From: Octopus sinensis
Lineage: Eukaryota
Length of the DNA stretch: 64,000 bases
NCBI RefSeq assembly: GCF_006345805.1
Contig: NC_043014.1
Location: 33,170,001-33,234,000, forward strand
Reading direction: 5' to 3'
Part shown: piece after piece, positions 1,024-60,145 of the stretch
How the letters are laid out: each line of letters opens with the position of its first letter
How positions within the stretch are numbered: the stretch's first letter is position 1
Notes under the pieces: generated by a model
Told to the model about the DNA's origin: nothing
Databases searched by the model: none
What the model saw: the letters and a program-made list of their open reading frames with translations, nothing else
Made by a program: the position numbers and the translations under genes

Positions 1024-1133
1024 GCTGCAGACACATTGGCTGTACGACAGAAACGACGGATATACGACATCACAAATGTTTTAGAAGGAATCGGGTTAAT
1101 AGAAAAGAAATCAAAAAACAGTATCCAGTGGAA
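1024..1133 (+). CDS. E2F4: E2F copy A exon 2 (DNA-binding domain, second half)
   Basis: ttacAG|GCT GCA GAC...TGG AA|GTAATT; 110 nt; [37 protein letters not shown], matching the E2F4/5 DBD sequence as I recall it. Confidence 0.97.
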
Positions 1134-1722
1134 GTAATTTTTTTTTTTTGATTTTAAATAAGTATGGTAGATGCAGGTGTAGCCGTGCAGTTAAGAACCT
1201 TGCTCCATAAACATTCTAGCTCATTCAGTTCCTTGGGTGTCTTCTACTCATGCCCTGGGCCAACCAAAGCCTTGTGAGTGGATTTGGTGGACAGAAACTG
1301 AAAGAAACCCTTTGTATGTGTGTGTGTATGTATGTATGTATGTATATAAATTTTTTGTGTCATTTGTACTCAGTGTAAGTCAGACCTATTAATATAAATA
1401 TCTCTATATTAATACACCTGAAAGTTTCTACCCTTTGCTTTCTCTTGTTTTGCATATATACATATTTTGTATTTGATGAATTTAATATATTTAGTGTGTG
1501 TAATTCAGTGTTTCTCAACCAGGGTTCTGCAAAAGGTTCCTAGGGGCTCCGCGAGAAAGCGTGAGATAAGCTAATGCTAATTTCATGATCGTAATATTAC
1601 TATACATGTACAACATATTGTTGGTTATTGTAATATAGACATCATCTTGTCTAACCTATTATCAAAAAAATATGACAACCATTGGGGATATATTTAGTGA
1701 TGTCAGTAATTTATGGACACCC

Positions 1723-1754
<32 letters not shown>

Positions 1755-4700
1755 GATATTTACTATGTGAACTATGTTGAAAAAATATGAGAAAGATATG
1801 GTATATCATTTTTTTTTGTGCTGGGGTTCTGTGAGACATTTTAAGGGTTACGCAAGGGTAAAAAGGTTGAGAAACACTGGTCTAATTTGTCTATCTGCAT
1901 AATTGCCTATATATATATATATATATACACACACACTATTGCTAAATTTTATTACTTTTAAAGGCACATAAAAAATACCCACTACACTCTCGGAGTGGTT
2001 GGCATTAGGAAGGGCATCCAGCTGTAGAAACTCTGCTAGATCAAGATTGGGGCCTGGTGCAGCCATCTGGTTCGCCAGCCCTCAGTCAAAATCGCCCAAC
2101 CCATGCTAGCATGGAAAGCAGACGTTAAATGATGATATATATATATATATATATATAATTAATCTAAGCAGCTAGGTGCAGTGTGATACCATAAAGGAAA
2201 AATTCAATCATTAAGTGTGATTAAACATGTCTATATATATATATATATATGTTGTGTGTTTGTCTATATGTACCTGGGTCTTGACATTATATGACAGGTG
2301 TAAATCAGTCTTCTGTGAAACACATCTGGCCATAGCAGAATATTACCATGCTTGGAAAAAAAAAGTGAAGGTTGGTGGCATTAAGGGCATGCAGTTTTAG
2401 AAAATCTGCCTCAAGGAATTCTGTCTAACCCATACAAGCAAGGAAAAGTGAATGTAAAAATGATGAAGCAATGGCAATGGTTTAGAGATGTTGGAGCTTA
2501 TTTTAAGACAAGTTTTTGGGTTGAGATCATCATCTTTTTATCTTTCGCTTGTTTCAGTCATTAGACTGCAGCCAAGCTGGGACACCACTTAAAGGAATTT
2601 TAATCAAACTAGCAGTATAGCCAAGCGATGCTCGGGCTTGTTTTCTTTTCGACCCTTTAGAATTGGAATCTTTGAAAAGTAAAAATTTTGCATTATGTAG
2701 CTTCTTATTCTCTTTAAGTGAACATTTTTCTGGTTGAAATACACCGAAAAATGGTGACACAGCAGTAAAAAAAATCGTAAAAATAGAGATTTTCATAGAA
2801 AAAAGCACCTTTTTGATGTAAATAATTTTTGGTGTTAACATGGTCCAATTTGAATTTTTTCTTCTACGTAATAAAGAGCAAGCCTTCTTCTATCATGCTC
2901 TCAATTTTGGTCAACTTGCGCCTAGGGTCTCGGAGGAGATAATGTTAATTGGGGGCTACCAAACCTGCCATACACAGACAACTTCAGCTTTATATATAGA
3001 GAGATTTAAAACTTACACTTTTAGAATTCCATTTCTCATTATAAGCATTTTCATTATCCTTTTGGGCCTCTCTGTTTCACCTCCATTTACCTAACTAGGC
3101 AATAGGTACTGGAGGTGGAGTGAAGTAAATTATTTGCATCCAGGAGCAGTAATAGATATCTTTCTTCACATGTTTAACCCTTTAGCATTCAGATTATTCT
3201 ATCATATGTAATGTTTATTTATTCACATTGTTTTGAATTAATCATACATTATCTCATAGCTTTGAGATTTCATTGATGTGTACAATGACACTCTAGATTA
3301 GATGTGAAAAGCTGTACATGGCCAGTTTTAACATAAAGCGAGGAGGAGATTTGGGCTGGATGTGTCCAGTTTAACTGCAAAAGTGTTATAATGTTGTCGT
3401 GCTATTGAAGTCTTAATATTAGTCCTGTTTTAATACATACTCTCTTTCTCAGAGGAGCAGGTCCAGGCTGCACTTCCAAGGAAATATCCAATCGGCTTTC
3501 AATTTTAAAGAACGAAACTTCCAGGTTGGACCAGCAGGAGAAGGCCCTCGACTCTCATAAGAGCTGTATACAACAAAGTATTAAAAATATCACTGAAGAA
3601 GCATCCAACAGTAAATATCATTTTTTTGTTTTTGTTTTGTTTGGTAATCTGATGGACATGTTATTGTTTTGTGTGGTGGGTGTTTGTGGATTGGATTTTG
3701 AGCACTTGGTGTTAACAGGGAAACGAAAAGAAAGAAGCTGCTAAGAAAGAGAGAGAAGATATGCAATGGCTTTACCAGCTGGAATCAGAGAGACTAGCTC
3801 AATAACATGTGTGATAGCATGTGTGATAAGAGAGAAGGAGCTCCATGGTTGCTGATTGGCTGTAGGCATGGCACAGAAAAAATTGTGTTTATAATAGTGA
3901 TGAGGTGTGAGAAGGACAGAGGTGATTACTGCATTGCCTCAAATCAGCCCTGATTAAGAAAATCCAGTCAAAGGTGTTTCAGTTTTGACTATCCCATTTT
4001 TTTTGTATTTTCAAGATTACTTTATCCAACATGTTCTTTTTTTTTTTTTTTTTTTTTTTTCAAGATGGTAAAGTGTTTTGTGAAGCAGTTTTGGTCAAAT
4101 AATCATAGATTCCCTCAGTGATTTGTGTATATATGTATGTTTATACAGTAGCTACAATATAGTAATCATCATCATCATCATCCAGTGTTTTAAATCTAGG
4201 TTTTGTTCCTGTTAACAGGGATGGCTGGATCTACCTCAATGCCATAGCAACTGAGGTAGGTAGGTGCAACCCACCCCAAACTTTGGGCTGGCTGGTGCCC
4301 ATTCTCCTTTGCTATCATGAGGCTTTCTTAGAGCTGGATTTTCTTCAGGGAGCATGCCCTTGCTTACCCCCAACCTCAGTATCTAGACTTGAGTGGTCCC
4401 GAGACTGAGGCCTCTACCACGATTTTTAAAGAATGTGGTGGTAAACTAGCTCAGGAAGGTAGGGATGCTACTCCCTGAGACCCCTTTCAGAGCTCCCCTC
4501 CCTACCTATAATGAATGTGAGAAAAACTGCTTTATGGTACTGGAAGCATCTACTCCAGGCAAATTGTAGCATCCCAATGCTTTCCACTTACTCAGCCTGT
4601 GCTGAGCCTTGAACTATCAAATGGACTGACTGAGTCACCAACGATGAAGTCTTGCTTGATTCATGCCCCAACACCAAGCCTTCTCATCTTACTTTGATAA

Positions 4701-7700
4701 TGATGCCTTTGGTAGTTGGGCCACATATGCTACATGTTAGATAAGAGGATCTTAAAGACTTGCTGTACAAGTAACTGACCTCCAGTAAGCGAACATAGAG
4801 ACAACATGTCCTCTCTATATGAACATTGAAAGGTGGGAAGACATTGTTAGTGATCTTGTTGTAGACTGGAACTAAACAAGGGTTTAAGCCTTTAGTGTTC
4901 AGATTATTCTGCCACTTATTAATTCATATTGTTTTGAACTAATCAAGCATTATCTTGTCACTTCAGGATTTTGATAATGTGGTCGTTTATTATTAGAATG
5001 ACATTATAGAGTAAATGGGGGAGGCCAGATCTGTCCAGTTTGAACATAAAACAGGTGGAATAATTTGGCCAGATTATGGCTGGTTCAAATGCTAAAGGGT
5101 TAAAAACAAGAACAGAAGCCAAAGCTTGCCAAACAAAACCAGGAAAATAGCACCAGGACAATACTTATTTCTTTATTGCCCACAAGGGGCTAAACATAGA
5201 GGGGACAAACAAGGACAGACAAAGGGATTAAGTCGATTATATTGACTCCAGTACGCAACTGGTACTTAATTTATCGACCCTTGCCAAAGCTGACTTTGTT
5301 TACCATTGTTCTGCTGCCAAAATGGACTTTATTTTCTTTCCTTCCATGGTTAATATACCAGTCTTGTACTAGAGTCAAATTTATAATGGCTTCATCTTTT
5401 TTCACAAGAAATTCATGGCCTTATTCCTATTTTAGAAGTCATTATTTTTGACAGGTTTTGTTGATATAATGTTAGGACATCTATCATGTGAGTTTGTGGC
5501 AGCCAGAAACTTTTATAGGCAGTGAACTGGCAGAATTGTTGTGCAAGACAAAATAGCTAAGCAACAATTTTTCTGGCTTTACATTCTGAGTTCAAATTTC
5601 ATCAAGGTCAGCTTTGTGTTTCATCCCTCAGGATCAATAAAGTAACAGTTGATCACTAGGGTTGATGTAATTGACTAACCCCTACTCACTAAAACTACTG
5701 GCTTTGTGATAAAGTTTGAAACCATTATTATTAAAGTGGCGAGCTGGCAGAATTGTTAGCACACTGGGCAAAATGCTTAGCGACATTCTGAGTTCAAATT
5801 CTGCCAAGGTCGACTTTGCCTTACATCCTTTCAGGGTTGATGAAATAAGTACCAGTTATGCACTGGGGTTGATGTAATTGACTAACCCCGTCTCTCAAAG
5901 TTTCAGGCCTTGTGCCTATAGCAGAAAGGCTTATTATTATAAAATATTAAAGCAAACTCTACTTCAATGTTCTTTTACAGATACCAAGATGGCCTATGTA
6001 AGTTATGAAGATGTTTGTAGTGTTTTTCCTGGGAGTATCTTGTTATCTGTACAGGCACCATCAGGGACACAACTTGGAGTACCACTGCCAGAAATAGTAA
6101 GTGGCAAAAATTCTTATTGTGTAAATGTCTTAAGGTGAGTTGTGTTACCACAATACTACAATTATAATTTTTCTGGGTACTAGTTGGGGGGGGGTAAATT
6201 TTTTAAGGAAAATTTCACTTCAGCATGATCAAATAAGTCACTGTTATTGGCATGTGGATTGACTTATAAGATACTGAGTAGGTTGGTTGATGTTTCAGTG
6301 TTAGCAATCTGTAATCATTTGTATTTAGGGGCACATTATAGATGTAGGCATGACTGTGTAGTTAAAATGTTTGCTTTGTTCTCTTGTGTCAAGTGTTCAA
6401 GCCTGGTGCATGGCACAATGGCCAAGTGTCTTCTACCATAACTTTGAGTTATTTCAAACCTTGTTAGTGAAGGTGGATAAAAAAATGTGGAAGCTCATTA
6501 AATGGTTTGTGCCTATTTTGAAGTAGTATATACTTAAACTGTTGCATGAGTTAACACCACATACACTCACCACCATTGAATGCTTTTAATGGAGTACACT
6601 GTTTTATATCCCTTATCTGAGGATAACAAGCTTCCTTCTTAGTCATAGGAGACCTTTGTAAAAAAAAAAAAATTATGGCTATATAATGTTTATAAATATT
6701 GTCATAGGCATGGGTGTAGCTCTGTGGTAAGAAGCTTGCTTCCCAACCACATAGTTCCAGTTTCAGTCCCACTGCAGGGCACCTTGAGCAAGTGTCTTTT
6801 ATAGCCTCGGGCTGGCCAAAGCCTTGGCGTGGATTTGGTAGACGGACACTGAAAGAAGCCCATTGTGTGTGTGTGTGTGTGTATATAATATATATATATA
6901 AATAGTATGTGTATCTTTGTGTTTGTCTTTCACCACCACTTGACAACCGGTGTCAGTGTGTTTATGTCCCCATAACTTAGTGGTTTGACAAAAGAGACTG
7001 ATAGAATAAGTACTGGGGTCAGTTCATTCTTCTAAAAATTCTTCAGTGCAGTGCCCCAGCATGGCTGCAGTCTAATGACTGAAACATGTAAAAGATAAAT
7101 TTATTTTCAAGGAACAATTTTTGTAGATAGAAAATTTAATGGATTTATGCCTGATTTTCTGAAATGAGATATCTCTAAAACAGTTTGAATTTCTGATCTT
7201 CTGATCATTGGTTATTATCTTATGTGCCTCTGTTCTTTAAACTATTTTCTTAGCTTCATTCACCAGTCATCAAATACCTTATTTCTTCATGCATAACATA
7301 ATATTAGGCTGAGGTCTTGAACATGCCCCTCCCCTTATTTCTAATGCAGAAACGCAATGCTATTTACTGCCCTGATGGATTTAAATTTCTCATTTTAAAG
7401 TATCTTGCATGCACACATACACACACATGTACTTTTGCCTTACAGACCTTTGTAATTTCTCTTTTACTCAGGTGAACCCTCATAAACATTTAATGTTTAA
7501 AATAGTTCCTATTGTATTTTTATAATTAAATATTAGGAATTGTATAAAATATTAAAATATTTTGTGCATTGTAGAAATATAATCAACTTATTGCACAAAT
7601 TTTAACAAAATCTTTTGTGGACCCCAGTTGAGAACTACTGATGTAAATTAAACAAATATTGTATTTAATTAATAATCATATGAAACATAGCTACATGTAC

Positions 7701-8439: not shown

Positions 8440-11400
8440 TTGTTGAAGAAACATGTTCTTTGTCTATCTACTTATCCTCTTTGTGATTTTGGATAATAAG
8501 AAAACTATACAAATGAGTCCTTCGAATTTAACTAAATTCTATATTTTAATGCAGCTGAAGATTGCTCTACATTTTAAAATTTATGTAATATTTGCATTGT
8601 TCAATTAAATGGAGTCGCATGAAACGATCGTACTGCATTATCTCTGGATATCCTTGTTGCTTATTTTGATTACATATATATATATATATATACACACATA
8701 CATACATACATACAGGGTGTCCCAGAAGTTGCACACCATCCTGGTTTTTTAAAAGAATACACCTTTATTGATTTCAAAAACACTTTATTGAAATTAATCG
8801 TAACAAATGCTCAAATTGAGCACCCTCTACAATAAAACATGCAGAATAAAATGTAATAAAATAAAATGCTTTAATTATTTTATATGTAAACCAGAATGGT
8901 GCACGACTTCTGGGACACCCTGTATATATATATATATATATATGAGCTAGACATTTTAAAGAATCCCATCATAGAAAATGCTGTGCAAAAAAACATGAAG
9001 TAGGATTACACACACATAAACCACCTCTGGGAATTTCTTTGACATGTGCTTGTCAAGGTACTTTTGTGAGAGAAAATTGCTTTTATTTGCCGTCCCTTTA
9101 CAGGTTACCATGAACATTTTTGTTAATCCACTTGTGGGACATAAAGGCACAAGCTGAGCAACGTTTTTAATGGAAACCCAGCAGATACCCATGCATTCAA
9201 GTTACTCCTGATCCCTTGCATTCAAGTTACTCCTGTATACACCACATACACTGTCCAAGGGAATAGCAAGGGCCAGTACAATTTGGCACCAGTGTCAGCA
9301 CAACCATTGCAGAAAGAATCCAAAGATCCAGAACAAATACCAGAAGGCATCCAACATTGACTATTCTCTCAATAAAGAGAAAGCTGACCTTGGGATTTAC
9401 ACCAAGGGTGCTGAACCTGAACAAATACGACAGTGTCTCTGGCAATTTGTTCTCTCTTTCATTCCTGCTCTCATTTCCTCTCTCTCTCAGTTTACCCACT
9501 TTCCAATCTCTGGTCCACTCTACTATATACACCACCTTGTAACTTGGGTGTATGATCCCTGTCTCTTCTCTTGTCACATCTACACCATTTTTCTTTCCTC
9601 GCTCCCTCTCTTCTCCATCTGAAGAAGCCATGCCTGACACCTTTCTGTCCTTCAGTACAATTCCCTCCACCCATTTGAGGAATCTTGTCCTGCAAGTTAC
9701 TTGGTGACTTCACTGTTGCTGGTGCTGTGTAAAAAGCACCCAGTACACTTTGTAAATTGGGTGGTGTTAGGAAGCGTATCCAACTGTAAAGAGTTTGGTG
9801 TAATCTTTTGGTTTGCCTGTTCTTTGTCAAACCATCTCAACCTATGCAAGCATGGAAAACTGGGCAGTAAATAATGATGATTCTGATGGTTCCCTCCCTC
9901 ATTTTCTCTCTCATAATCACAAGCACACATGCATACACACATCTAATGGAAATTTTAATTTTCTTTTTATATCTATTTGTCCATCTCATTTTTGTAGAGT
10001 CTGGCATTAAAAGCAATATCTTTATATTTTTTTTAATTATTTTTTTTTTAGGGCCCAGGTGTCTTAAGGAAGTACCAAATCCATTTGAAGAGTACGTCTG
10101 GTCCCATCAATGTAATGCTGGTGAATAAAGATACAGACACTTCAATTCCTGAAGTTGTCCAAGTTCCACCATACCATGATGATAAGAAGATGGAGATATC
10201 CCAGAAACAGATGTTGATACCTGCTGTCAACAGTGTGAAGTCTCCCTTAAAGACTCCACACAAACAGCTAAGAAAGGTATATCTTTGCGTTTTAAGAAAT
10301 TTAGAAAAGCTTTTAGACTTTGTGCACATTCATAGGTAATAGGAGTGGCTGTGTGGTAAGTAGCTTGCTTACCAATCACATGGGTCTGGGTTCAGTTTCG
10401 CTGTAAGTGGAACCCCCTCCTTTTTTGATAACAAATACTCCAGTTCAATTAATAAATTTTTTTTATTCCTTTTGTGTGAGTATTCCACTGGCATTTGTGC
10501 CTGTAACTTATTTTTCAGACAGAATCTGTGTAACACTGTTGTGGGACAAGGTGACCATTTGAATTACATTTGGTCATAGACATCTATCTATCCGCTCAGT
10601 CGAAGTCGACTCTCGGTTACTCGATGGATCAGTGTCCTCCAGTCAGTTCTATCCTGGGCCGCTTCTTTCAGATTGGCTATGTCCATTCCGGTATCACTCT
10701 TGATGGTGTCAAGCCAGCGGGTTCTTGGTCGGCCTCTTCCTCTCTTAGCCCGGGGGTCCCACTGTTTGGTACCATCATATTAGAATTCTTACACTTTTGA
10801 TCCATAGAGTATATTGGCCTGGTCTTTCCCCAGGCCAGAGCCGTTTAGCCAGCATACTTACCATATGCCGTTGCCAACCCCAGCACCACGGTTAGGAGAA
10901 CGGTTGGGCTTTGGAAGGGGGTTCTTAGACATATTAATACATATATACATGCAGACCTGCATACACACACTCTTTACATGGCACCAGCACAGATTTTATA
11001 GACTAATCCTCTTCATTAGGGAGAGCAGCATAAATACTTACACTGTGGAGGATGGGTTTTCTTGAGTACAGCAAGATACCAGATCCTTGGCCTTTGTCAC
11101 CTCTAAGGTTCAGTGCCCTGAGATCATCCTTTGTCCCATGTCTTCCTGGGTCTTCTCACACAAGTAGAAGGAATGAAATAAGTAAATAAATAAATGTCTA
11201 AGTAAAACCTACTAATTGGAAATAGAATCATGTGATGTCATTACAATTAACTGTTTTTTTTCTTGTCCTCACCCTCCTATTATTTTTCAGAAATCTCCTC
11301 TGAAAACACCTCTTTCACCTGTGAACCGAATGACCACACGATCATCACCACGCAAAATGTCTCAACCCTATACGAATATATTACGTATGTTATCTTCGAG

Positions 11401-14400
11401 TATTTTTACTCTTTCTGCTTGTTTGTCTTTTCATTTCTTTTTTTATCTGCTTTCCTTTCTCCCTCTCTCCTTCTCATCTTTCTCTTTCTCCTCTTTTTCA
11501 TCCCTTATTCTCCCTCTTTGTCCCTCCTGTCCTGTGATTTTTTTTTCTCCTTCTCCAAAAACATTTCTATAACAAATAAGCAATCTAGCCTATCCTATCT
11601 GCTTCAGCCAGCAAGCATGTCAGTTCGTAATAATATATATATATGTGATAATTTCAGTTAATCATTAAATATTTTTAACACATGCACATAGCATACACTT
11701 TTTAAAATCAAAATCACTACTGCACTAATACTTAGTTTTTCTATAATGCATTGCCAGAATTTGAAATGGATTCAGAATATAAATATATATATATCTATAT
11801 CTATATAGGTGCAAGAGTGGCTGTGTGGTAAGTAGCTTGCTTACCAACCACATAGTGACAGGTTCAGTCCCACTGCATGGCACCTTGGGTAAATGTCTTC
11901 TACTATATAGCCTTGTGAGTGGATTTGGTAGATGGAAACTGAAAGAAGCCTGTCATACACATATCTATATGTGTGTCTGTGTTTGTCCCCCCCACCATCG
12001 CTTAACAACTAATGTTGGTGTATTTACATCCCTGTAACTTAGCAGTTTGGCAAAACAGACCAATAGAATAAGTACTAGGCTTACAAAGAATAAGTCCTGG
12101 GGTTGATTTGTTCGACTTAAAATGGTGTTCCAGCATGGCCACAGTCAAATGACTGGAACAAATAAAAGAATATCTTTTACATGATGATTGTTTTAGGAAA
12201 TTGATTCTTCATAAAACCATGATTTTCTTTATTTTGCAGCTCATACCAACAATCAATTCACCAGTTCCAACATTACTGATAATCTCACAAATGATCTACT
12301 TTTCAACAGTACAAAACCTTCATTTAGTAAGTATTGCACTTCGTCTGTTACTTCTGCTACACATTACACTTTCAGTCTTATACTTTTTCTGTTACACTCT
12401 CTACAGTGTTCTCACCAATATTACAGACATCCAGCCACCACAATTATTAAAGATCCCACCCATAAAACACACTTCTAACCATGCAACCCCTACAACATTC
12501 TTGCTTCTAACAAGCAGATGTGTTTACTTCAGTGTTTTTTCTTGAACTGTTAGAAATAATAGCTAAATTTTCTTCAAGTTACTCATGATAAAGATTGATA
12601 TGGTAGATAATTCTGTTGGAATTCACAATAATTGAAATCCAGACGTAGTAGTCGTGGCTTGATTTTTGGTTCAATGCCCTGAGGTCGTCCTTTGTCCTAT
12701 GTCTTCCTGGGTCTCCCCACACACAAGTAGAAGGAATGAAATAAGTAAATATGGTTTTGCCTGATGGAAGCTGACTTGGAACTAAATAATTTCTTAGAAA
12801 ATCTCATCTAGAGCTAAACTCTTCTTACCCCTTACTACATCCTTCACTAATAATGCTACTCATACTGTAACATCAGCTACGCCACTATGATGCTCTCATC
12901 TGATGTCACACGCTACTTCCTACAACACAACCACGAACCAACTACCTGCTAAAAATATTGGCTTCAAATTATGGCACAAGGCCAGCAATTTCAGGGAAGA
13001 GAGCAAGTCGGTTACATTGACCACAGTGCTCAAGTGGTACTTATTTTATTGACCCCATAAGTATGAAAGGCATTCCTGCTGGGATATTCCTATCATTTTC
13101 TAACTTTTATGTTAACTTAGGACTACATGTGTCTTTTCTTTTTAGAAGAAAGCAGGATAAGATTTGAGGGAGATTGAGCTGCTACTTGTAGCAAATCAAG
13201 TAATTGCATTGAGGCCCCTTCAGTGGTACGATATGGCTATGGCATTGAGGATGATGGCTAACAGTCCTGCATAATGTCATAAAAACTAGCAACAAGAATT
13301 TTGATGAGTCCATAGATCCATGTCAAATTTTTGAAGGAAAATTACCAATTAGAAACTGCTCCTAAGCGAAGATGACTTTGGCTGAATTTGCACTCAGAGC
13401 ATAAAGATGGACAAAATGCCACTAAGCATTTTGGCAGGGAATGCTAAAGATTCTACCAGCATGCTACTTACCTGCTAGAAATACTAGGTTGATGGAAAAG
13501 TTTGTGTGCTTTGTTAAAATAATGAATTGAATGAATACACACACCACAAAAATATATAAAAAAGCGTTATTTTAACATGGTGCACAAACTTTTTCCTTAA
13601 CCTAATATTAACCAAATCATTCTCATGGAACATCCAATCTATTGTTTTTAAGAAATATACGAAAACTTGAATTAATGAAAGTGTCAAAGTTGAAATATTT
13701 TTAATTGTAGGCTTGTAGCTCTACATGATCAGGTTTAATTTGGGATTAAACTAACACCATTACCACTATCACACACCTTCACCACAATGTGTGTCCACTG
13801 CCGTTGCCACCACCACCACCAATACTACATGTTGCCATCCCTACATAATTCTTATCTCATATTTCCATCTAAAACTATTTTCACTTCTTACTTTCAGGTG
13901 GTAAAGAATTTATTGATGATCTTGGCTTCATCTCAGCTGACGGTTCGTTTGTTTCTAATTAATATTTATTTATAATTGTTGCTGATGGGTGGGTCAATGC
14001 ATATCTCCTCCATTATTATTGGGTCAGCAAATAGATGATGGGAGGGTCACAGTCTCTTCTCTTTTTTATATAGCGGTTACAATAGAGGGTGAGTGGGTTT
14101 GTGAGTCTCTCTCCAATCTCTGATTTGGTCAACAGATAAAGGCTGTATAGGTCACACTGTCCCTTTTCCTCTGGTTAGCACATTAGATTGTGTGTAGGTC
14201 ACCATGTGTCTGCTCCTCATCTCTAATTGGTCAGTATGGTAAAAAGAAAAAGCTGGGTGGGTCACCATCCATCTCCCTCTAAGCATGAAAGAAGATGAGT
14301 AGGTCACTGCCCTTTCTCCTTCTCTGAATGATCAATCAGATAGAGAGTGAGTAAATCAGTGTCTTGCTCCCCTCCATCATTGTAGGAGTAGTTCCAGATT

Positions 14401-16799
14401 TTTTGTCCTTATGTTGTTCTGTTGCTGGTGTTTTTGTTATTTTGAATTAAGCCATAGTAAACTTCACCTCTCATCCACCTGAGATTGTTAGTCATTTAGT
14501 GAGTATTGATTAAAACACTACCCAAAAGTTGTAGTAAACCCTGTATTCATGTAACAAATGGGGTGGGGGAAGGTATCTTTTTTCTTCACAAATGTAAATA
14601 AACCCAATCTGTTTCTTAAACGAGGGACATATTCATACGGCACAGAATGTTTTTTTACCTCAATGGACGTCTGTGATTGGTTAAAATTGCCGAAATGCTC
14701 GAAATTAAAGATGAAATATCTTACAACATATAGAATTTTCTCAATAAACCAAGAAAAAAATGATGTTTTATAAACACATTCTACCAGTATATGAAGTTTA
14801 AAACTTTTTAGTTACCTAGAAATTATGTTAAAAACCGCCGTTGAAAAGGAAAAGATCCAATGTTACAAGTTATTTTGTTGTTGCTGTTGTTCTAGTAAAG
14901 TTGCTAGTTGTAGCTGTGATGTTGTTTAAAGTTACAGGGCACTCAAGCTAAATTTGACAGCATGAAAAGAAAAGGAAGCATAATATCCCATCCAAAAATT
15001 AAAATATTTTTAAAAATATCAAATAAAGCTGGGAACAATTTACTCAAAGTAGCTGTCCTCAACGTCGACCACAGTCTCAAGATGGCCCCCAAACCTGGAG
15101 CATGCATTCTTCACTGTGTTCTTAGGAAGATATTCAAACCACTCCTTGATTTTGGCCACTAGCTCAACCTTGGTGTTACAGGCGGTGTGGTTGGTGTCTT
15201 TCTCAACTGTGTTCCACACATAGTAATCCATGGGATTACAATCGGGGGAATTAGGAGACCAGGAACTTAATGCTGGTGAAGTTATAGAAATATTCCAACA
15301 ACCACATCTGACTCTTTTTGAAGGTATGGCAAGAAGGCAAATCCTGCTACCATGCTTATGGCCTTCCAGCAGCAACCCTCTCCAGCCATTGATTAACCAT
15401 AATCTCCAGCAGCTTCACATAGCTGTTTGAATTGAACCTAAGGCCCTGTTCATCGGTTGCTGGATGAATTCTAGTGTTTGTATGCAGTCAGAATGCCTGC
15501 TGTGTCCCTTCCTGCTGGCCACAGCCTTGTAGTCACCATAGCAGCTCTCCATGTCACATCTTACAGCCTTTACAGTGTCCATAGAGCATTGAGCAGTAGT
15601 CATAATGTCAGCATTTCATCATGGTACAAATCATCATGATGCAGGTAACTCTTTTCCAATATGCAGATGGCTTTCAATTCTCTATGTCAGCTAACTTTTT
15701 CTCAAATACAGTTTTGAGGTTTGTGCTCTCCAATGCTATTAACACCAAGCTGTTCCTGACAAAAAAAAGTGTCATAAAAAAATCATCAAATTTAGTCCCA
15801 ACTCCCTGTAGTTTAACAGGTCGGCTTGTAGCTGACAAAATCACTAATGTATTGTTTAACTAAAAGTTCAGTGGACCACGCTCTTCTCTCTCTTGGTGTT
15901 CTGGCAGAGAAGAATATTGTTAACTAAAATATAAGCAACGAAATTTGTGTGGTTGGGTTAGTGTGTTTGATGGTTTTTGTTATTGTTGTTGGTCAGCTTC
16001 ATGTCAGCAGTCCTTATTGAGCAGCCCTGTGATGATCAAAATCAATTCAGCTGTGACCATCTTCTCTTTCTTTCAAACATCGTATATTTACAACTTCATT
16101 ATCCAATATATTCTTTGTTTAAGATGATGTGGTGTGATATGAGGAGAGGAATATTTGGCTGCACTTTCCAGCAGGTCAATTGACTTGAATGTTGCATTTC
16201 TATGTGGATAGGAGCAGTTCCTAATTGGTAATTTTCCTTCAAAAATTTGACATGGATCTATGGACTCATCACAATTCTTGTTGCTGGTTTTTATGACATT
16301 ATGCAGGTCTGTTAGCAATCATCCTCAATGCCATGGCCATATCGTACCATTGAAGGAGCCTCTATGCAATTACTTGATTTGCTACAAGTAGCAGCTAAAT
16401 TGTCCTCAAATCGTATCCTGTTTTCTTTTAAAAATAAAAGACACATGTAGTCCTAAGTAAACACAAAAGTTAGAATATGATAGGAATATCCCAACAGGAA
16501 TGCCTTTTGATCATAGATCTGCTACCTAGGGTCTTACCTGGGGTTGCACAACAACTAGCTGTTTTAGCAAAATTTTGAAATTGAAATTTAAAAATCTAAT
16601 GCAGATCATGAATAAAATGGGATTTTTCTCCTTTTTTTTTTCCACAGGCTTGGAACCGTTGTTGCATCTAAGTCCTCCACCTAGTGAGAGGGATTACCAT
16701 TTCCATTTGGATGATAGTGAAGGCGTCTGTGATTTCTTCGATGTTCCTCTACTACCCCCCCATGCTACTGCTGCATCTTCAGCCACCCCCTTCTACTGA
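1024..16799 (+). CDS. E2F4: E2F4/5-like transcription factor, copy A (5'-partial; join of 1024-1133, 3453-3610/3614, 5981/5985/5988-6096, 10052-10276, 11291-11384, 12240-12326, 13898-13942, 16648-16799)
   Basis: Eight exons with compatible phases give one open frame of 984-987 nt. It contains the DNA-binding domain ([22 protein letters not shown]), coiled coil, marked box and C-terminal pocket-binding motif [17 protein letters not shown]. Exon 1 lies upstream of the window. The low-complexity exons 6-8 are less certain. Confidence 0.92.
2609..3004 (-). mobile_element. Non-autonomous Helitron (396 bp)
   Basis: On the minus strand it begins TC and ends CTAG, has a subterminal hairpin CCGAGC-ATC-GCTTGG, and is inserted between A and T with no TSD. 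The empty site is visible in the paralogous segment at 147/148. Confidence 0.85.
3453..3614 (+). CDS. E2F4: E2F copy A exon 3 (coiled coil); ends at 3614 (AT donor) or 3610 (GT donor)
   Basis: tctttctcAG|A GGA GCA GGT CCA GGC TGC; [53 protein letters not shown] aligns with E2F4 GVGPGCNTREIADKL...QQSIRNVTED. Confidence 0.93.
4560..4850 (+). mobile_element. Decayed RTE-clade LINE 3' fragment (boundaries approximate)
   Basis: Frameshifted translation [26 protein letters not shown] resembles the RTE C-terminus RWLGHV.RM.D.RIPKDLLYGEL. Confidence 0.5.
5981..6096 (+). CDS. E2F4: E2F copy A exon 4 (marked box N-part); start 5981, 5985 or 5988
   Basis: [36 protein letters not shown]|GTAAGT aligns with E2F4 [35 protein letters not shown]. 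Confidence 0.93.
6707..7097 (+). mobile_element. tRNA-derived SINE family 1 (representative copy)
   Basis: A/B-box-like head (TGTGGTAAG...GTTTCAGTCCC), shared body ACCTTGAGCAAGTG...GAAAGAAGCCC, internal (TG/TA)n, tail GACTGAAAC...TAAAAGA. Confidence 0.75.
8713..8922. mobile_element. Tc1/mariner-type MITE (210 bp)
   Basis: TA|CAGGGTGTCCCAGAAGTTGCACACCAT...ATGGTGCACGACTTCTGGGACACCCTG|TA; about 35-bp TIRs with TA TSD. Confidence 0.85.
10052..10276 (+). CDS. E2F4: E2F copy A exon 5 (marked box C-part plus linker)
   Basis: (t)nAG|GGC CCA; [27 protein letters not shown]...KQLRK|GTATAT; matches E2F4 [21 protein letters not shown]; phase 0-0. Confidence 0.92.
10581..10757 (-). mobile_element. 5'-truncated RTE (BovB-like) LINE 3' end
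   Basis: Minus-strand frame [52 protein letters not shown] followed by a short GATA-like tail; resembles the BovB C-terminus. Confidence 0.85.
11291..11384 (+). CDS. E2F4: E2F copy A exon 6 (S/T-P rich)
   Basis: tttttcAG|AAA TCT CCT...TTA C|GTATGT; [31 protein letters not shown]; phase 0-1 fits its neighbours. Confidence 0.75.
11808..12171 (+). mobile_element. tRNA-derived SINE family 1
   Basis: Full head-to-tail copy GGTGCAAGAGTGGCTGTGTGGTAAG...GGTTCAGTCCC...AAATAAAAGAA in intron 6 of copy A. Confidence 0.8.
12240..12326 (+). CDS. E2F4: E2F copy A exon 7 (low complexity, predicted)
   Basis: attttgcAG|CT CAT ACC...TTT A|GTAAGT; open in phase 1-1 ([28 protein letters not shown]). Supported by splice signals and phase only. 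Confidence 0.6.
13898..13942 (+). CDS. E2F4: E2F copy A exon 8 (45 nt)
   Basis: cttactttcAG|GT GGT AAA GAA TTT ATT GAT GAT CTT GGC TTC ATC TCA GCT GAC G|GTTCGT; [14 protein letters not shown] is positionally equivalent to E2F4 LLEELMSSE; weak donor. Confidence 0.65.
14935..15808 (-). mobile_element. Deleted Tc1/mariner (maT/DD37D-like) element
   Basis: TA|CAGGG...CTAAATTT TIRs at both ends; minus-strand remnant [21 protein letters not shown]...KNACSRF...SYFE. Confidence 0.8.
16648..16799 (+). CDS. E2F4: E2F copy A last exon (pocket-protein binding / transactivation region, TGA stop)
   Basis: tttttccacAG|GC TTG GAA CCG; [49 protein letters not shown], compared with E2F4 [31 protein letters not shown]. 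Confidence 0.95.
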
Positions 16800-19529
16800 T
16801 ACCTCAGGCATTTGTCTCTTCTCTTCACCTCTTAAAACATATCTTCAACAGCCACTTATGCCTACTATTACTACTACTACTACTACCACCACCATCACCT
16901 CCACCACTATTCTCACTGTCGTCATCACAGTTATCACACCATTCCATATAAATGTTCATTCCTATTTTTATAAATAGGTTTGTATGCTCCTCCTCTTCAC
17001 TATTTCAATATCCCTTTTCCAATGGTAGGTATAGAGTGGAGATAGTAATGGTGAAAAGTGGTTCTTCAACACACACATACACACACACAAATGAAAAGGG
17101 ATCTTATAATAGACATTGTCAAGATGTCTTTATCATTGTCCTCATCCAAGGGAACCATACTACTCACTCTCAGGGTTTAAAATACTACATAGATCACAAA
17201 ATATTCCACCTATGTCATCACAGTTTTAATTATTCATTTTACTTTTTCTTTATCTTTCATTTATTTTACCTTTAATTGTTATTTCTAAGTGTGGCAGATT
17301 GGTAGAATTACTAAAGCATCACATTAAATGCCTTGCAGCCTTTTTCATGTTCTGAGTTCAAATATTGCTAAAAGTCAACATTGCCTTTCATCCTTCGAGG
17401 ATCAATGAAATATAGAATGAGTGAAGTATGGTGCTGCTTATGTTAGAAATTATTCGAGAAACATTTCAAGTCCTATTATTACTCAGAACTTAATACTACT
17501 AATTAATTATTGGTTTCAAATACTGGCACAAGGCCAGCAAGTTTGGAGGAGTAGGCAAATCAATTACATCAGGCCCCCAGTTCTTGATTGGTACTTATTG
17601 ACCCTGGTAAGATGAAAGGCAAAGTTGTTCCTTAATGGAATTTGACCTCAGAATGTAGAGACAGGCGAAATGTTGCTAAGCATTTTGCCCTGCATGACTG
17701 CTAATGCATAATTACTAACTACTATATATATATATATATATATATATACATACATACATACACATGTATATCACTTGTAAAACATACGCACCCATGTGGT
17801 TAAAAAGTTTGCTCCAATTAACCTTAACCACTATGTAATGGAGGTTTTAATGTAATTTCAGTAAAAATGTTCAGTGTATCTTTGGTTTTGAAAATAGGAA
17901 CACTTTATCCCAGAGTGTTGTAAAAAGTGATTAAAACGGTTTGTATCTGAAAGGACATCTGGCCAGAAAACACTACCTCAAAAAATATCCCTTCCTAACT
18001 GTTCTAGAATGGAAAACATGGATGTGATAACAATGACAGTCAAGGTTTGATCTGAATGGAAAGCTAAAGAGGGTTGGATTGTGTTGTGATTATGGTGTTG
18101 GTACCATGGTAGGAATAAAAAGCAAGCACCAGTAATATACTGTCCAGCCCAGTAAACTCTAACTTACTCCAAATTAGTGACTGTTGCAAATGTGAGAGAT
18201 TGTTATTGGATTGGTAGAATTGAGCATCAGACAAAATGCCTTAGTGAGATTATTTAGTTCTGATTTCAGATCCTGCTGTAATTCTCCTCTTTTAGTTGGA
18301 ATGGAAATCAATAAAAATCCACTATACCCCTTTCCTTTATTGTCGTGGGCCCGTTTTAAAAATTGTTACTGCTAGTTGGAGTGGTGAAAGGGAGTAAAAA
18401 CAGTCAATTTTGTGGTATCTTTTAGTCCAACCCATGCCAGCATGGAGCATGGTCATTAAATGATGACTATGATCCGAGTTCAAATGCTACCAAGGTTGGC
18501 TTTTGCTTTTTATCCTTTCAGGGTTGATGTGGGAGGGAAAGGGGGTCAGTTGCATTGGTTGTTTCTTGCTGTCACCAAATTTTACGACCTTGTGCCAATC
18601 TTTGAAATTAATTATAAAATAGTGAATTTGTTGTTCTGGGTTCAGATTTTGCCATGGTTAAACTTTGCATTTCATATCTCCATATTTGATAAAATTAAGT
18701 GCCAGTCATGGACTGGGACCAATTAAAATTAACTAACTTCCAACCAGCAAAATTGCTAGCCTTGTGCCTATATTACAAAGAATTATTTTTGGAAAGGTGG
18801 TGGATTAGTGGAATCATTAGAATATTGGACAAAATACTTTGCAGCATTTCTTCTGCTTCTGTACATTCTGATTTAAAATTCCACTGAGGTCAATTTTAGC
18901 TCTTAAGTTCTTGAGTATGATAATAGACCAGTGACATACTGGGGTTGATATAATTGACTGTTTCCTTCCCTAAATTTTCTGGACTTGTGCCTATTATTAT
19001 TATCATTATTATTATTAGCAGAGTGGGCAAAACTAATAAAAGTTTGTTAACAGTTATTATTATGTTATAATAAACCACTTTTTATTTTTTTAAGACTTTA
19101 TTTTTACTGAGTTATGAGGGCAAATTTAATAAATAATGCAATTGTTTTCATTTTTAAATACATGACAGGTGGCATTACTTTTTTTTTATTATTATTGTCT
19201 TTGCCACTCTTACAATTTTGCTGCCTGGCTGCAGAAATTATTATTTGTTTTAAGTTTTTGCAATACTACAGGGCTGCTATAGTCTTTACATAGCTTTAAA
19301 AATTGCTCCCAAATTAATTTTTCTTTTTTGATATCTGTGTGGTCTACACACGTACACATATGTTAACAAGCTAAAATATATTGATGGCTGATACTTTGTC
19401 AATAGGTACTTCTGAATGTTTGATATCATTGTTATGTCTAGACATGTACACACATGTATATGCACACACACACATGTATGTGTGTGTAGATATATTTTGT
19501 GTGCGTGTGTAATATATATTTTTAATTAA

Positions 19530-20617
19530 CCCTTTCGTTACTATATTTCTGACCAAAATACACCCCTTATGTGTTTCAATTAATTTCTAACATAATCATA
19601 AATTTAGTCTGGTTTCATTAAACAACTATAACTTTTTTATTTATCAATATATTAATGTGATTTTTGGAAGATAATTTAATGAAATGTTCTCAACCAATTC
19701 TATACTATAATTTTTGTCACAAAGTGACTCTAATTGCAGGTAGATACAGGTAAATTCAACAAAATATAAAATTATTAAAATTTTTGTTCAAACATCACTA
19801 TAGAAAATGGGTTATTAGCTAATATTCAATTGGGTATACAACAAAATTTTACTATAGAATTTGTTATTCTGGGTAACTTTCTGATACCCATAATAATATT
19901 TATGGCAAAATAGGCCTTAATTTCATTTAAGGTTGTGGGAAACCACAAACTATCCTTTCCTTCGCTTTGTTTACATTTAGCGTAACAGTTCGTTTCTGCT
20001 GTAATGATTTCAAATAGGCTCATTCGAAAAAGTAAAAAAGAAATAGTCTAAGGCTTTACTCTCCTGGGAAAGACTGTGGCTTGGTCCAGTTTCTTCAGAA
20101 AAATCATCGAAATAAACAGTTTTTAAATTTTCACTCCATTCAGGTGCCAATTCATTTTCTTTATCGCTGTCGGAGCTCTCGGATTCACTGTTTTCACTTT
20201 CGGAAAATGAAACATCGGATTCATTATCAAATACCTCATGCTTTTTTTTTCAGTCGTAGTTAGATTTATCAAGGTCTTCAGTAGAAAAGCCTTCGAATTC
20301 TGACTCGCTGCTTGATATAATGAAATTCGTATAAAATTTTTTGTCAGAATTACAAATTTTGAAAACACAATAGGAACAAATTTCGGAAAAAAATCTCCCA
20401 AAATTCACGGAATTAAAATTACACTTTGATCATTGTACAAAACTGTAGATGAACTGTTTACGAAGTATAATCACATGTTTTCACGAATGTACTAAAGAGA
20501 TTTGCTCTGATATTCTCATTTAAATATGAATAGGTAAATACGGGCAGGTTTGGGCGGTTTGGTCACATTAACCAAAATTTTTTTCGGGCGGCTTTGGGCG
20601 GTTTGGTAACGAAAGGG
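19530..20617 (-). mobile_element. Internally deleted piggyBac element (1088 bp)
   Basis: TTAA|CCCTTTCGTTAC...GTAACGAAAGGG|TTAA; minus-strand remnant WFPTTLNEIKAYFAINIIMGIRKLPRI is typical of the piggyBac transposase N-terminal region. Confidence 0.88.
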
Positions 20618-21558
20618 TTAAACTAATGATTCACTTTGTCACTATTTAGTTTCTGACAAAGTGCAATAATGTAACAGGTTTTTCTTAAATGGTTGCATTT
20701 GTTGAGAAACTCTGAGTATTGATGGACTTAATCATGTCTAAAATAAATGAGTTCTACTTAAAGAATTTTATCTATATATATGCACACACATACACACACG
20801 TGTGTGTGTGTGGTAAAAATATTTTGTTTTCAACACCAGCTTAACAATGAAAGAGTTCTTTTATTGAATCCCTCCAAATTCATTATTAATTTCACTAGAA
20901 ATATAGTCAAAGGAAGGTTAAATATTATAACATTAACTTGTCTGTTTTTTCATACAGATGGCAGCTATTTTTTTTTTTTTTTTTTTTTTGTAATTCCTAA
21001 ACATATTTTTTTAGTTGCCTTTACCAATCCCCGCAAACAAAAAACAAACATAAACCAAGTGTTTCATTCATTTTCACTTCATGGATTATTATAAAAGAAG
21101 GCAGCATCAAACTACTTAGGCAAAAAAAATATATATATATATATGGCGGTGCCCCAGCATGGCCACAGCTTGTGAGCTGAAACTAGATAAAATAAAAATA
21201 AAATAAAATAAAAATATATATTACTTCAAACATTGTATCTGCTAATATTTGAATTTGTTAAAATATTGCAGAAAAACAACAAAAGAGAACTCATTTGGTA
21301 AAATAAAACTCATATGCACACAAACACACACCTTACAATCTTGGTGCCTTCTTGTTTGATAAAATTTTTAATGTGAAAATAAAAACAAATGAATACATTT
21401 TATTTTCTCTGAATTCCTGTCAGACAAAAGACAAAAAAAATACAAGCACAAACGCATACATATATTAGCATATGATCAAAGTATTTTCCAAATTACTTTT
21501 TGAAGACCTTTTTAAAGTGCATTATATGCATTTCATCTAATTACATGTATTTTTATAG

Positions 21559-21594
<36 letters not shown>

Positions 21595-22136
21595 AAATCT
21601 CAATGTCTCACTCTTTCTCTTATGTGCACACAGCACACATACACTATTGTATACATCCATACACACACTCACACTCATGTATGTGTATGCATGTAACCAT
21701 GAAACTTTCATTTTCAGCTCACTGATTTATAGTCTACCAATGAAATCTGGTTGCATGAAACCTTTAGGTATGGCTATATAAACTTGTTTATTACATACAC
21801 TATACACTTGTAAATTCAAGAGTGTAGTTATCATTTACATGTTTTTGTAAAATAAAATTTAAAAAAAAAACAATATGATTTAAATTTTTGGTGTAAAGAT
21901 TCAATATTTATAACCAAGAACAAAAAAAAGTGACTGTATTTTTATTTGAATTAAAATAAAAAGGAAAAAAAATTGTTAATTTGTCTATTGGTGGTTGTTG
22001 AACTTTATTACCTGTCTGTATCTTTTCTGTGCTTCAGTCATTAGACTAATAATGAGATAAGACATTGGGCAGTGTTCAGCACTGAACAATTTAGGTGATG
22101 GATAAAAAATGGTTAAGTGGTTGTGTAGATATGTGT

Positions 22137-23908: not shown

Positions 23909-24054
23909 AAGAGATGACAAAGGAATAAATGCATATCTTAAGAACTTCATTAGCTTACAGCTGTTTCCACTATGAGATGTAGTGGACTCAGTTGATTGCC
24001 TGAGTAACACTTTAGTTTCATCAGAACCTCAAACATGAAGCCTGCATGTGTGTG

Positions 24055-24095
<41 letters not shown>

Positions 24096-24187
24096 AAAAG
24101 TTCTATCTCCTAGATAAAATACCACAGTGAATGCTTTTTGCTTACAGAAGTATGCTGTCCTCATCTACCTATATATATATCTCTCTT

Positions 24188-24390: not shown

Positions 24391-24427
<37 letters not shown>

Positions 24428-57178: not shown

Positions 57179-57213
<35 letters not shown>

Positions 57214-57599: not shown

Positions 57600-57735
57600 A
57601 TGAATTTCATTAGCTTACAGCTGTTCCTGTTATAAGATGCAGTGCTCCAATGAATCTATAAGGTGATGCACAAGCACTTAGCCTTCAGTGCACTGTATCT
57701 CATAACAGAAACAGCTGTAAGCTAATGAAGTTCAT
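57600..57735. mobile_element. Short fold-back MITE (~135 bp)
   Basis: ATGAATTTCATTAGCTTACAGCTGTT...AACAGCTGTAAGCTAATGAAGTTCAT; single arms also occur at ~23943 and ~43066. Confidence 0.7.
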
Positions 57736-60035
57736 TATGTAATATCCTGATCACTTGACATTCATTTAATTACATACATGTGTGTGTGTCTGTGTGTTTG
57801 TATATGATCCAGGGATCCAAATGTAGGGAATTTGTAAGCTTGAAGCAGTAGGTGGTTAGTATAGAGAAAAAATGGACAGTATATGGTAAGACACAATCAA
57901 TAACTATTTATTGACATCAAGAGCTACATGTGTTTTCGCATACTGAAATTGTAAAAAAATTTGTTCAGTGGATAGTTTCTATACACTGTTAGCAACTAAT
58001 AGTGCTAAAAATGTGATTAAAATTCCAAACTGAAGGAGTGGAATAGGTAAAATGTAAGCTATATGCATTTCTTAACTGGTTGAAGCTCATGCAAGTGTTG
58101 CACAATGAACTTTCTTCAGCATAGCTAATCATCAGGCTAAAATTACTTTAATGAAGTTTACATTGCTGCATGGAATTCCTAAGTCAGCCATAACACAACG
58201 GTGAGTCCAACTGAATAGCAAAGTCAATAGTAAAGAATAATAAAGACAAAAGTTGAGAGAACCAATGAACATTTTAGCACAAGGTAAGATCCAAAATATG
58301 CATAGAGTGGGAGTGGTTTGGAGTCAAAGAGTAGGAAGCAAAGGAAAGGAAAGGAAAGAAGAAAAAGATTATGGGAAATAACAGGGTATGTATTGGGGTA
58401 ATAAAACCCTTTTCAAGAGATGTTGACTGCAGATTTTGGTAGATAGCACGCCAGGCGAAATGCTTAGCGGTATTTCGTCTGCCGTTACGTTCTGAGTTCA
58501 AATTCCACTGAGGTCGACTTTGCCTTTCATCCTTTCGGGGTCGATAAATTAAGTACCAGTTTCACACTGGGGTCAATGTAATCGACTTAATCCCTTTGTC
58601 TATCCTTGTTGGTTCCCTCTATGTTTAGCCCCTTGAGGGTAATAAAGAAATAAGATTTTGGCAGACAGTATGTTGTCCAAATTTATGTGAGTGAATGGGT
58701 AGCGAAGTCAGATTGTTCATGCCATCTGCTCTATTGGGGTTACCATACAGCTTGCAGGACTATTAACCCTGGGAGAGGTGGGAGATTAACTTCATGTTAG
58801 GGGACAAGGGGTTAAACTGTGAGAAGGAAGGGAGGTTCTTCTAAATATTAACACCAGTCCATACCAAGTAATATTCTTCAAAGACGGCATTTCTGGCATT
58901 TAGAACTTAAAAATGAACTGATGACAAACTTAATTCTTTTTATTGAAAGACACTACAAAATACCAGTCATGGATTTGAATCAAAAGCCTATGGACCAGTA
59001 ACCTACTACATTATCTGCTGACATTGTTCATCACAGTGTTCTATAATGTTGGTTGTTGTTTAAACTCAGATCATTGTCTCTGACCTTTAAGATGATGGGG
59101 TGGGGTATAATTAACCCTTTTGTTGCCATATTTCTGTTGACATATAATGCTTTTGTTTCAGTTTATTTTTAAAATAAAGAATTTAGTGGAATAACTTTCT
59201 CATTATTGAGCTGGGGGCTGGAACAAACTGACATAAAATTTCAATGGAAGATTATAATTTAGATCACATTAAAACAGTAAGTTTGTCATAGAGCCAGGGA
59301 CACTCTCAGGTAGTTTGGTTTTCAAAGGTTTAAAATAAGATGTGGTTGCTTTTTCTAGCTTGTTTAGTTATCACATTGAAGTTCCCCTATTGCTATATGT
59401 GAAGGTGGTATTGTTTAGCCCTGATCAATCAAATACATTCCGGTTGTGACCATCATGCCTTTTACCTATGTGCAGGAAACTCAGGACCACATCATCCTCT
59501 TTTTTTTTTATGTCCATTGTCCATGTTGGCATGGGTTGGACAGTTTGACCAGGGCTGGTAAGGCTGTACCGGGCTCCAGTCTAATTTGTCTTGGTTTTCT
59601 ATGGCTGGATGTCCTTCCTAACGCCAACCACTCAGAGTGTAATGGGTGCTTTATGTGCCACCGGCACAGGTGCCATTTGCATGACACTGATATCTTCCAC
59701 GACTGCAATTGTTCTCAGCATGATGGGTTTTCTTCTCAAGCACTACATAATGCCAAAGGCCCAACATTCGAAAGGAACCCAGCCACTTTGATCCATGTGG
59801 CTCAACACTCAAAAGGAACTCAGTCACATTGCCTGCATTTAAAAAAAAATTTTTTCCTAACTTGGAAATGGGTGATTTGACTGCTAGTTGGAGCAAGTCA
59901 GCCAACCACCACATAGGTACTCACTAACTGGCTTATATCTAATGTTTATAATGGTGTTGGTGTGTGGTCTGGTGTGGTGTAGCAGTGATACTGCTGAAGT
60001 TTTTTTTAACCCTTCTCTCTTAATTTCTTTTACAG

Positions 60036-60145
60036 GCTGCAGACACATTAGCTGTGCGACAGAAACGACGGATATACGACATCACGAATGTTCTAGAAGG
60101 AATCGGATTAATAGAAAAGAAATCAAAAAACAGTATCCAATGGAA
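60036..60145 (+). CDS. E2F4: E2F4/5-like copy B exon 2 (DBD second half); gene continues past the window end
   Basis: ttttacAG|GCT GCA GAC...TGG AA|GTAAGT; 110 nt, protein identical to copy A exon 2. Intron 1 is 37002-60035 (23,034 nt). No exon 3 homolog found before 64000. Confidence 0.96.

Follow-up and report, generated by a model that had tools for sequence, protein, structure and literature searches.

Two E2F4/5 Genes in the Octopus sinensis Window

We analysed a window of 64,000 nucleotides of Octopus sinensis DNA, which carries parts of two neighbouring genes of the E2F4/5 class, named here gene A and gene B. The window is 100% identical to chromosome CM016876.1 of assembly GCA_006345805.1 at about 33,170,001-33,234,000. 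It contains exons 2-9 of gene A, with the stop codon ending at 16799, and exons 1-2 of gene B, with the ATG at 36882. Both genes lie on the forward strand, head to tail, and all coordinates below are those of the window unless another locus or scaffold is named. The original prediction, made from the letters of the window, had described such a head-to-tail pair with these two gene ends, and the exon chains, the Pfam matches and the pocket-binding motif agree with it. A human E2F4 sequence served as a probe for locating exons only; all gene models were later rebuilt from database proteins. Exact exon chains were recovered for both genes, each with nine coding exons.

Exon 1 of gene A lies about 20.9 kb upstream of the window. 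Exon 2 (1024..1133) encodes the DNA-recognition helix with the RRxYD motif, exon 3 (3453..3610) the end of the DNA-binding domain and the start of the coiled coil, exon 4 (5981..6096) the CC-MB domain, and exon 5 (10052..10276) the marked box and a linker. They are followed by exon 6 (11291..11384), exon 7 (12240..12326), exon 8 (13898..13942) and exon 9 (16648..16799), the last of which holds the pocket-protein-binding motif and the TGA stop codon (16797-16799). The translation of this chain is exactly the 368-aa protein XP_029647495.1, and the O. vulgaris protein CAI9737685.1 is identical in sequence. A spacer of 20.1 kb (16800..36881) follows; it holds a reverse-transcriptase fragment of a long interspersed nuclear element (LINE) and tandem repeats, and no E2F exon. 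The product of gene B is the 348-aa protein XP_029647496.1, whose RefSeq model starts exactly at the ATG at 36882. Coding exon 1 of gene B occupies 36882..37001 and coding exon 2 occupies 60036..60145, and exons 3-9 lie past the window end, at window-equivalent positions 64424-76478. In public records of four species, both genes are already annotated as adjacent 'E2F5'/'E2F5-like' models.

Family Identity and Protein Features

Judged from their predicted proteins, A and B are repressor-type E2F4/5-class genes. The Pfam domain E2F_TDP (PF02319) was found at residues 14-78 of both proteins (E 2e-26 in A and 5e-27 in B), and the domain E2F_CC-MB (PF16421) was matched with E-values of 2.2e-27 in A and 2.7e-31 in B. 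The best PDB matches were the E2F4 DNA-binding domain 1CF7 (E 7e-37) and the CC-MB structures of E2F4 (5TUU) and E2F5 (5TUV), both at about E 1e-30; the sole further match was E2F8 (E 2e-11). The RRIYD motif was read directly in exon 2 of both genes. The C-terminal motif DYxFxLxxxEGxxDLFD, predicted to bind pocket proteins, was read from the sequence of A (16648-16799) and of B. The N-terminus is short in both proteins, with the DNA-binding domain beginning at residue 14. A short N-terminus without the cyclin-A-binding and nuclear localisation extension separates E2F4/5 from the activators E2F1-3. The named top protein matches were all E2F4, E2F5 or E2F4_5, and by these matches the nearest relatives belong to E2F4/5 and not to E2F1-3, E2F6 or E2F7/8. 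A first protein search with a 77-aa query gave short fragments only, with no cephalopods among the matches.

The peptide encoded by exon 2 is invariant from octopus to vertebrates, and over exons 1-2 the vertebrate E2F4 database proteins are 91-99% identical. The exon-2 peptide is also identical to that in the human E2F4 probe sequence. The DNA-contact helix is identical in A and B. Elsewhere, each protein has changes of its own. In gene A, the first half of the DNA-binding domain contains LLTSKFVSLLQDTEDGVLDLR, and the pocket-binding motif reads DYHFHL...DFFD. Gene B is without six marked-box residues (PEIGPG) that are present in A, in the cuttlefish gene and in other molluscs, has YQIYLKS in the marked box, and retains the ancestral pocket-binding form DYQFNL...DLFD.

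In the DREAM/pocket-protein repressor, which enforces quiescence, E2F4/5 provides the DNA-binding arm. By analogy with vertebrate E2F4 and E2F5, A and B should, together with DP, bind the E2F site and bring in p107/p130-like pocket proteins. That A and B divide partner preferences between them is plausible but speculative. E2F sites of the form TTTSSCGC were absent from the whole window, where 1.8 are expected by chance, which gives no support to autoregulation through E2F sites. Directly upstream of the gene B start codon, at 36650-36830, there is a purine-rich low-complexity stretch of AGG/GGA/GTG repeats.

Similarity of A and B around Exon 2

The two exon-2 copies, at 1024-1133 and 60036-60145, are 110 nt each, with AG before and GT after. 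In O. sinensis they differ at 6 of the 110 positions (TTG/TTA, GTA/GTG, ACA/ACG, TTA/CTA, GGG/GGA and CAG/CAA). Each of the six is a synonymous transition, and the encoded peptide is the same; exons and codon pairs are as originally reported. The probability of six synonymous differences out of six is 1.2e-4 if all substitution types are equally likely and 1.4e-3 for transitions only. The similarity is not confined to the exon. It also covers about 44 nt of the upstream intron, where differences are very few, and stops sharply beyond that. In a blastn comparison, the sole colinear similarity between A and B was 980-1137 versus 59992-60149, a tract of 158 nt with 94.3% identity. The gene A copy of this putative gene-conversion island (980..1137) comprises exon 2 together with the preceding 44 nt or so of intron 1, which include the 3' splice region, and with 4 nt of the donor site; 59992..60149 is its gene B counterpart. 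Other colinear homology between A and B was not found by blastn, and the remaining matches are dispersed repeats in both orientations. These repeats are not colinear, and the statement that the introns are otherwise non-homologous is thus essentially right; it missed only the similarity of about 44 nt upstream of exon 2.

To compare this tract between species, exon 2 with 150-nt flanks was aligned for A and B of O. sinensis, O. vulgaris and Argonauta, for B of O. bimaculoides and for the cuttlefish gene; A of O. bimaculoides was added later, to the difference counts and the tract comparison. Between A and B of the same species, exon 2 differs at no position in Argonauta (110/110 identical), at 2 in O. 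bimaculoides, at 5 in O. vulgaris and at 6 in O. sinensis. Between the genera Octopus and Argonauta it differs at 12-15 positions. There is no site in exon 2 that is diagnostic of A or B across the Octopus species. The adjoining intron behaves in the same way: both Argonauta copies are preceded by ATATCATATAATATTGCATCA(C/T)ATCATATTATATTTCAG, and both Octopus copies by TTTTTTTAACCCTTCTCTCTTAATTTCT(G/T)TTACAG, which is unrelated to the Argonauta tail. The borders of the tract are near-identical in the four species, running from -39..-44 to +4..+9 relative to the exon (158-160 nt).

Quartet-informative sites were counted inside and outside the tract. In exon 2, none groups the sequences by paralogue and 10 group them by species; in the 41 upstream intron nucleotides the corresponding counts are 0 and 22, and the signal is gone further upstream. 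Outside exon 2, by contrast, 118 sites group the sequences by paralogue, 17 by species and 13 in the third way. The species-wise signal of the island differs from the rest of the gene with a Fisher P of about 4e-10. Grouping by species within a tract, combined with grouping by paralogue outside it, is what interlocus gene conversion typically leaves behind.

Of the roughly 24 synonymous sites in exon 2, 12-14 differ when Octopus and Argonauta orthologues are compared, corresponding to a synonymous divergence (dS) of 0.78-1.09, like that of exon 1. RNA folding of the 158-nt tract revealed no notable structure (z -0.43 in Octopus and +1.47 in Argonauta). Synonymous or RNA-level constraint on exon 2 was rejected on the basis of the orthologue dS of 0.8-1.1 and these folding scores.

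Two features of the O. sinensis gene A exon 2 are peculiar to this copy. Its donor region (1134-1150) reads GTAATT followed by a T run, which is a weaker match to the consensus in this assembly; GTAAGT is found in O. vulgaris, O. bimaculoides, Argonauta and all B copies. In addition, the codon at 1126-1128 is a private CAG, where the others have CAA.

Distribution of the Tandem Pair

The order A then B was also found in independent assemblies of O. vulgaris, O. bimaculoides and Argonauta hians. In O. vulgaris, the spacer between A and B is 18.7 kb and the locus is 92-99% identical to the window. The order in O. bimaculoides is a BCL11A-like zinc-finger gene, A, a spacer of 12.5 kb, B and a kinesin gene, and that in A. 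hians is A, a spacer of 8.6 kb, B and the kinesin gene. The pair is flanked by the zinc-finger gene upstream and the kinesin gene downstream. The cuttlefish Acanthosepion pharaonis has one annotated E2F4_5 gene, which adjoins the same kinesin gene as octopod B. A search with the cuttlefish protein, in a collection without squid or Nautilus proteins, gave one cuttlefish cluster and two Logan transcripts within it. In the protein search, other molluscs gave one E2F4/5 match per species.

The pair had been suggested to belong to a larger cephalopod E2F array. When the A, B and cuttlefish proteins were used as tBLASTn queries against the window and every retrieved locus with 10 kb on either side, only the known exons were returned, leaving two copies and no third in any of these species. 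The suggestion of a lineage-specific duplication with both copies functional fared better: the duplication is not pan-molluscan, and both copies are intact and under purifying selection, as described below. On present data it is octopod, not cephalopod-wide. Our literature search found no paper describing an octopus E2F4/5 duplication; as noted above, the two genes themselves are already annotated.

Two irregularities of the O. bimaculoides chromosome assembly (CM046620.1) concern gene B. The RefSeq model XP_014780551.1 (311 aa) owes its shortness solely to an N gap within exon 5 (locus position ~37189 onward). Part of exon 3 occurs twice, at locus positions 31135-31298 and 31517-31628, about 380 nt apart, which is probably a local assembly duplication.

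Age of the Duplication

Outside exon 2, A and B are old paralogues. Their proteins are about 63% identical and several exon lengths differ. Synonymous sites between A and B are saturated outside exon 2 (proportion of differing synonymous sites 0.73-0.82), and the nonsynonymous divergence (dN) is 0.25-0.31. The A-specific and B-specific residues and the differing exon lengths are common to Octopus and Argonauta. The paralogue-wise grouping, these shared residues and the saturation indicate that the duplication predates the Octopus-Argonauta split.

A neighbour-joining tree was built from Kimura distances with bootstrap. The A, B and cephalopod clades each received 100%, and A and B grouped together with 95% support, with the cuttlefish gene as their sister; either alternative to this grouping received 2-3%. 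Shared derived residues outside exon 2, polarised with outgroups, number 7 for A with B, 4 for A with cuttlefish and 0 for B with cuttlefish. Evolution has been faster in both octopod copies than in the cuttlefish gene, with 21 lineage-specific derived residues in A and 14 in B against 4 in the cuttlefish. From these sequence comparisons, the duplication was quite probably octopod-specific, having arisen after the octopod line left that of the cuttlefish.

Maintenance of Both Copies

The reading frame of nine exons is intact for A and B in all four species. When O. bimaculoides is compared with O. vulgaris, the ratio of nonsynonymous to synonymous substitution rates (omega) is 0.17-0.21 in gene A and 0.06-0.08 in gene B; this ratio had been proposed as a check in the original prediction, and it points to purifying selection on both genes. 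Between Octopus and Argonauta, omega is about 0.05 for A and B, with dS saturated at this distance. As read from these substitution patterns, both copies are maintained under purifying selection.

An intron-less copy of part of the gene B coding sequence was found on the unplaced O. bimaculoides scaffold LGKD02062228.1 (1509-2266). It comprises 758 nt (coding nt 190-947, from the middle of exon 2 to exon 9), follows an N run, is 99.5-100% identical to the chromosomal B exons, and supplies the stretch of exon 5 that is missing from the chromosome because of the N gap. The copy represents either a cDNA-derived assembly sequence or a very young processed retrocopy, and in this respect it is evidence for the splicing of gene B.

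Proposed Interlocus Gene Conversion and Alternative Explanations

We interpret the locus as an old, maintained tandem pair of E2F4/5 genes in which an island around exon 2 has been homogenised by interlocus gene conversion, and we put the probability of this reading at roughly 0.88. Selection at the protein level is unable to hold silent sites or intron bases, and therefore the likeness of the island needs another cause; the pattern of substitutions suggests that interlocus gene conversion is what keeps it alike between A and B. Each lineage would have undergone one or more conversions since the two genera diverged, and O. bimaculoides perhaps a further one. What had been taken for a signature of purifying selection in the near-identity of exon 2 is, with its intron part, its species-wise grouping and the dS of 0.8-1.1 between genera, mainly one of gene conversion. 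The count of six synonymous to zero nonsynonymous differences is a valid sign of selective filtering since the last conversion, and is of little use for judging how old the duplicates are or what became of them.

The sequence of events may have been as follows. A tandem duplication would have occurred before the Octopus-Argonauta split, most likely after the separation of octopods and cuttlefish. Both copies would then have been kept by purifying selection, each gathering its own substitutions: the first half of the DNA-binding domain of A would have changed, as would its pocket-binding motif, and B would have lost six marked-box residues. Meanwhile an island of about 158 nt, reaching from ~40 nt inside the end of intron 1 through the whole of exon 2 into the very start of intron 2, would have been repeatedly homogenised by interlocus (non-allelic) gene conversion. 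The exon-2 peptide is invariant across animals, and for this reason exon 2 may be the only stretch similar enough for homologous repair to pair A with B. Each conversion would renew the homology, including a bit of the adjacent intron, and so permit the next one, which could produce a self-sustaining island with the same borders in two lineages.

Several points weigh against this interpretation. Conversion is read from sequence patterns, and the matching island borders in two lineages are accounted for by argument. The O. sinensis copies already differ at 6 sites of exon 2, and the last event in that lineage was not recent. The 7/4/0 split of shared derived residues is only moderate support for the grouping of A with B, and the tree is a neighbour-joining tree with long branches for both octopod copies, in which long-branch attraction could inflate that support. 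The decapodiform sample is a single annotated cuttlefish proteome, and the dating rests on one outgroup cephalopod. Finally, the support for transcription of gene A is limited to the existing RefSeq and ENA gene models.

The near-identity of exon 2 might instead be due to purifying selection on an essential DNA-binding peptide since the duplication, perhaps with synonymous constraint. The six synonymous differences out of six (P ~1e-4 to 1e-3) and the invariance of the peptide as far as vertebrates fit such an explanation. It would not, however, account for 12-14 synonymous differences between orthologues of the two genera against 0-6 between paralogues within a species, nor for about 40 intron nucleotides common to the paralogues within each genus and unrelated between genera, and there is no stable RNA structure to explain constraint at the nucleotide level; we regard it as very improbable. 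Independent duplications in Octopus and Argonauta, with the within-species similarity reflecting recent origin, would produce the species-wise grouping of exon 2 and the intron tail, but everywhere outside the 158-nt island the genes group by paralogue (118 versus 17 sites, with both clades at 100%), the A- and B-specific residues and exon lengths are common to both genera, and synonymous sites between A and B are saturated. We attach next to no weight to this explanation, nor to an assembly or haplotype artefact in which a single gene was assembled twice, which the original prediction had named as a possible refutation. The artefact has no support beyond the similarity of exon 2, and the two proteins are not near-identical over their whole length: they are 63% identical and their exon lengths differ. 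Because the pair occurs in independent assemblies of four species, each copy with its own orthologue in each, it is not such an artefact.

A different kind of doubt concerns the date. The duplication might be older, coleoid-wide or earlier, with one copy lost in the cuttlefish line and the grouping of A with B an artefact of long branches or of formerly wider conversion. Four derived residues common to A and cuttlefish, the length of both octopod branches, the apparent activity of conversion in the pair and the single decapodiform proteome all speak for it. We consider it unlikely in view of the 95% bootstrap support for A with B as against 2-3% for either alternative, the seven derived residues outside exon 2 common to A and B with none common to B and cuttlefish, and the lone cuttlefish gene, which adjoins the same kinesin as octopod B and is the only E2F4/5 protein annotated there. 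The one match per species in other molluscs, together with this bootstrap value, also indicates that the pair is not an old pan-molluscan duplication. As an extension of the conversion reading, the island may have been exchanged continuously since the duplication, with fixed borders, and selectively favoured because it provides the same DNA-recognition helix and splice acceptor to two subfunctionalised E2Fs. This we hold to be distinctly doubtful. If it were true, octopods would have evolved their own division of quiescence/DREAM functions, like that of E2F4 versus E2F5, independently of vertebrates, and conversion would lock target specificity while partner specificity diverges.

Repeats and Other Content of the Window

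An open reading frame of 164 aa in the spacer between A and B (24766-25260, + strand) gave a match to RVT_1 with an E-value of 7.5e-7, just under the Pfam cut-off. It is a fragment of a non-LTR (long terminal repeat) retrotransposon and coincides with a GC-rich bump at 24-26 kb. Tandem arrays of related 66-nt units are present in the spacer and in intron 1 of gene B, along with a separate two-copy unit of 185 nt (31469-31859, 42366-42645, 33252-33625); these arrays are probably internal repeats of a dispersed element. Many interspersed repeats of 200-400 nt, 70-92% identical and in both orientations, occur both in gene A introns and in the first intron of gene B, for example 14560-14861 versus 54159-54470, 11813-12171 versus 56045-56451, and 6715-7017 versus 63122-63443. 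These shared repeats are non-colinear and are therefore transposon copies, not remnants of the duplication. An Rfam scan of the window gave no match at threshold.

Comparison with Known Systems and Significance

The finding adds a new case to two known kinds of event, lineage-specific tandem duplication and short-tract gene conversion, and it leaves the existing knowledge of E2F biology and of gene conversion as such unchanged. The primate gamma-globin genes HBG1 and HBG2 are a known case of short-tract conversion, with mosaic genes in which a limited segment is identical within species and the flanks show the true age. Compared with the octopod pair, the globin tracts are longer, the duplicates are much younger, and the genes and taxa are different. 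In the case of Capitella teleta Dlx, closely linked tandem duplicates have been shaped in part by gene conversion (McDougall et al. 2011, PMC3199776). Both are lineage-specific duplicates of a usually single-copy spiralian transcription factor, linked and partly converted; the Dlx genes belong to another family and are arranged tail to tail, whereas the octopod tract is a single exon-plus-splice-site island of about 158 nt with the same borders in two genera. Among octopods, gene conversion has been reported for the reflectin and tyrosinase tandem clusters of Argonauta argo (PMC9635652). These share with the E2F4/5 pair the concerted evolution of tandem duplicates, seen as within-species grouping of paralogues. 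They are, however, multi-copy and highly expressed effectors with tracts of more than 1 kb and an interpretation based on dosage, unlike E2F4/5, a two-copy regulatory gene with about 158 nt homogenised and the rest saturated.

For work on duplicate genes, the locus is a caution. If the conserved exon alone is compared, a tiny conversion island lets an old duplication pass for a young, 'purified' one. Where dN/dS ratios or duplicate ages are taken from conserved exons in cephalopod genomes, conversion islands should be checked for.

The sampled invertebrates have a single E2F4/5 gene that is co-orthologous to vertebrate E2F4 and E2F5 (PMC3224931), and the octopod pair is therefore a duplication independent of that in vertebrates. 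In both cases one ancestral E2F4/5 gene became two, and the products share the E2F_TDP winged helix with RRxYD, the CC-MB domain, the C-terminal pocket-binding motif and the short N-terminus. The vertebrate genes lie on different chromosomes, whereas the octopod pair is a local tandem that appears to exchange one exon by conversion; function in octopus is assigned by homology and would follow that of the vertebrate proteins. The long-retained octopod pair is a natural, independent parallel to the vertebrate split into E2F4 and E2F5. As each copy has changed in a different partner-binding region, the pair may be used to ask how the functions of a repressor E2F divide.

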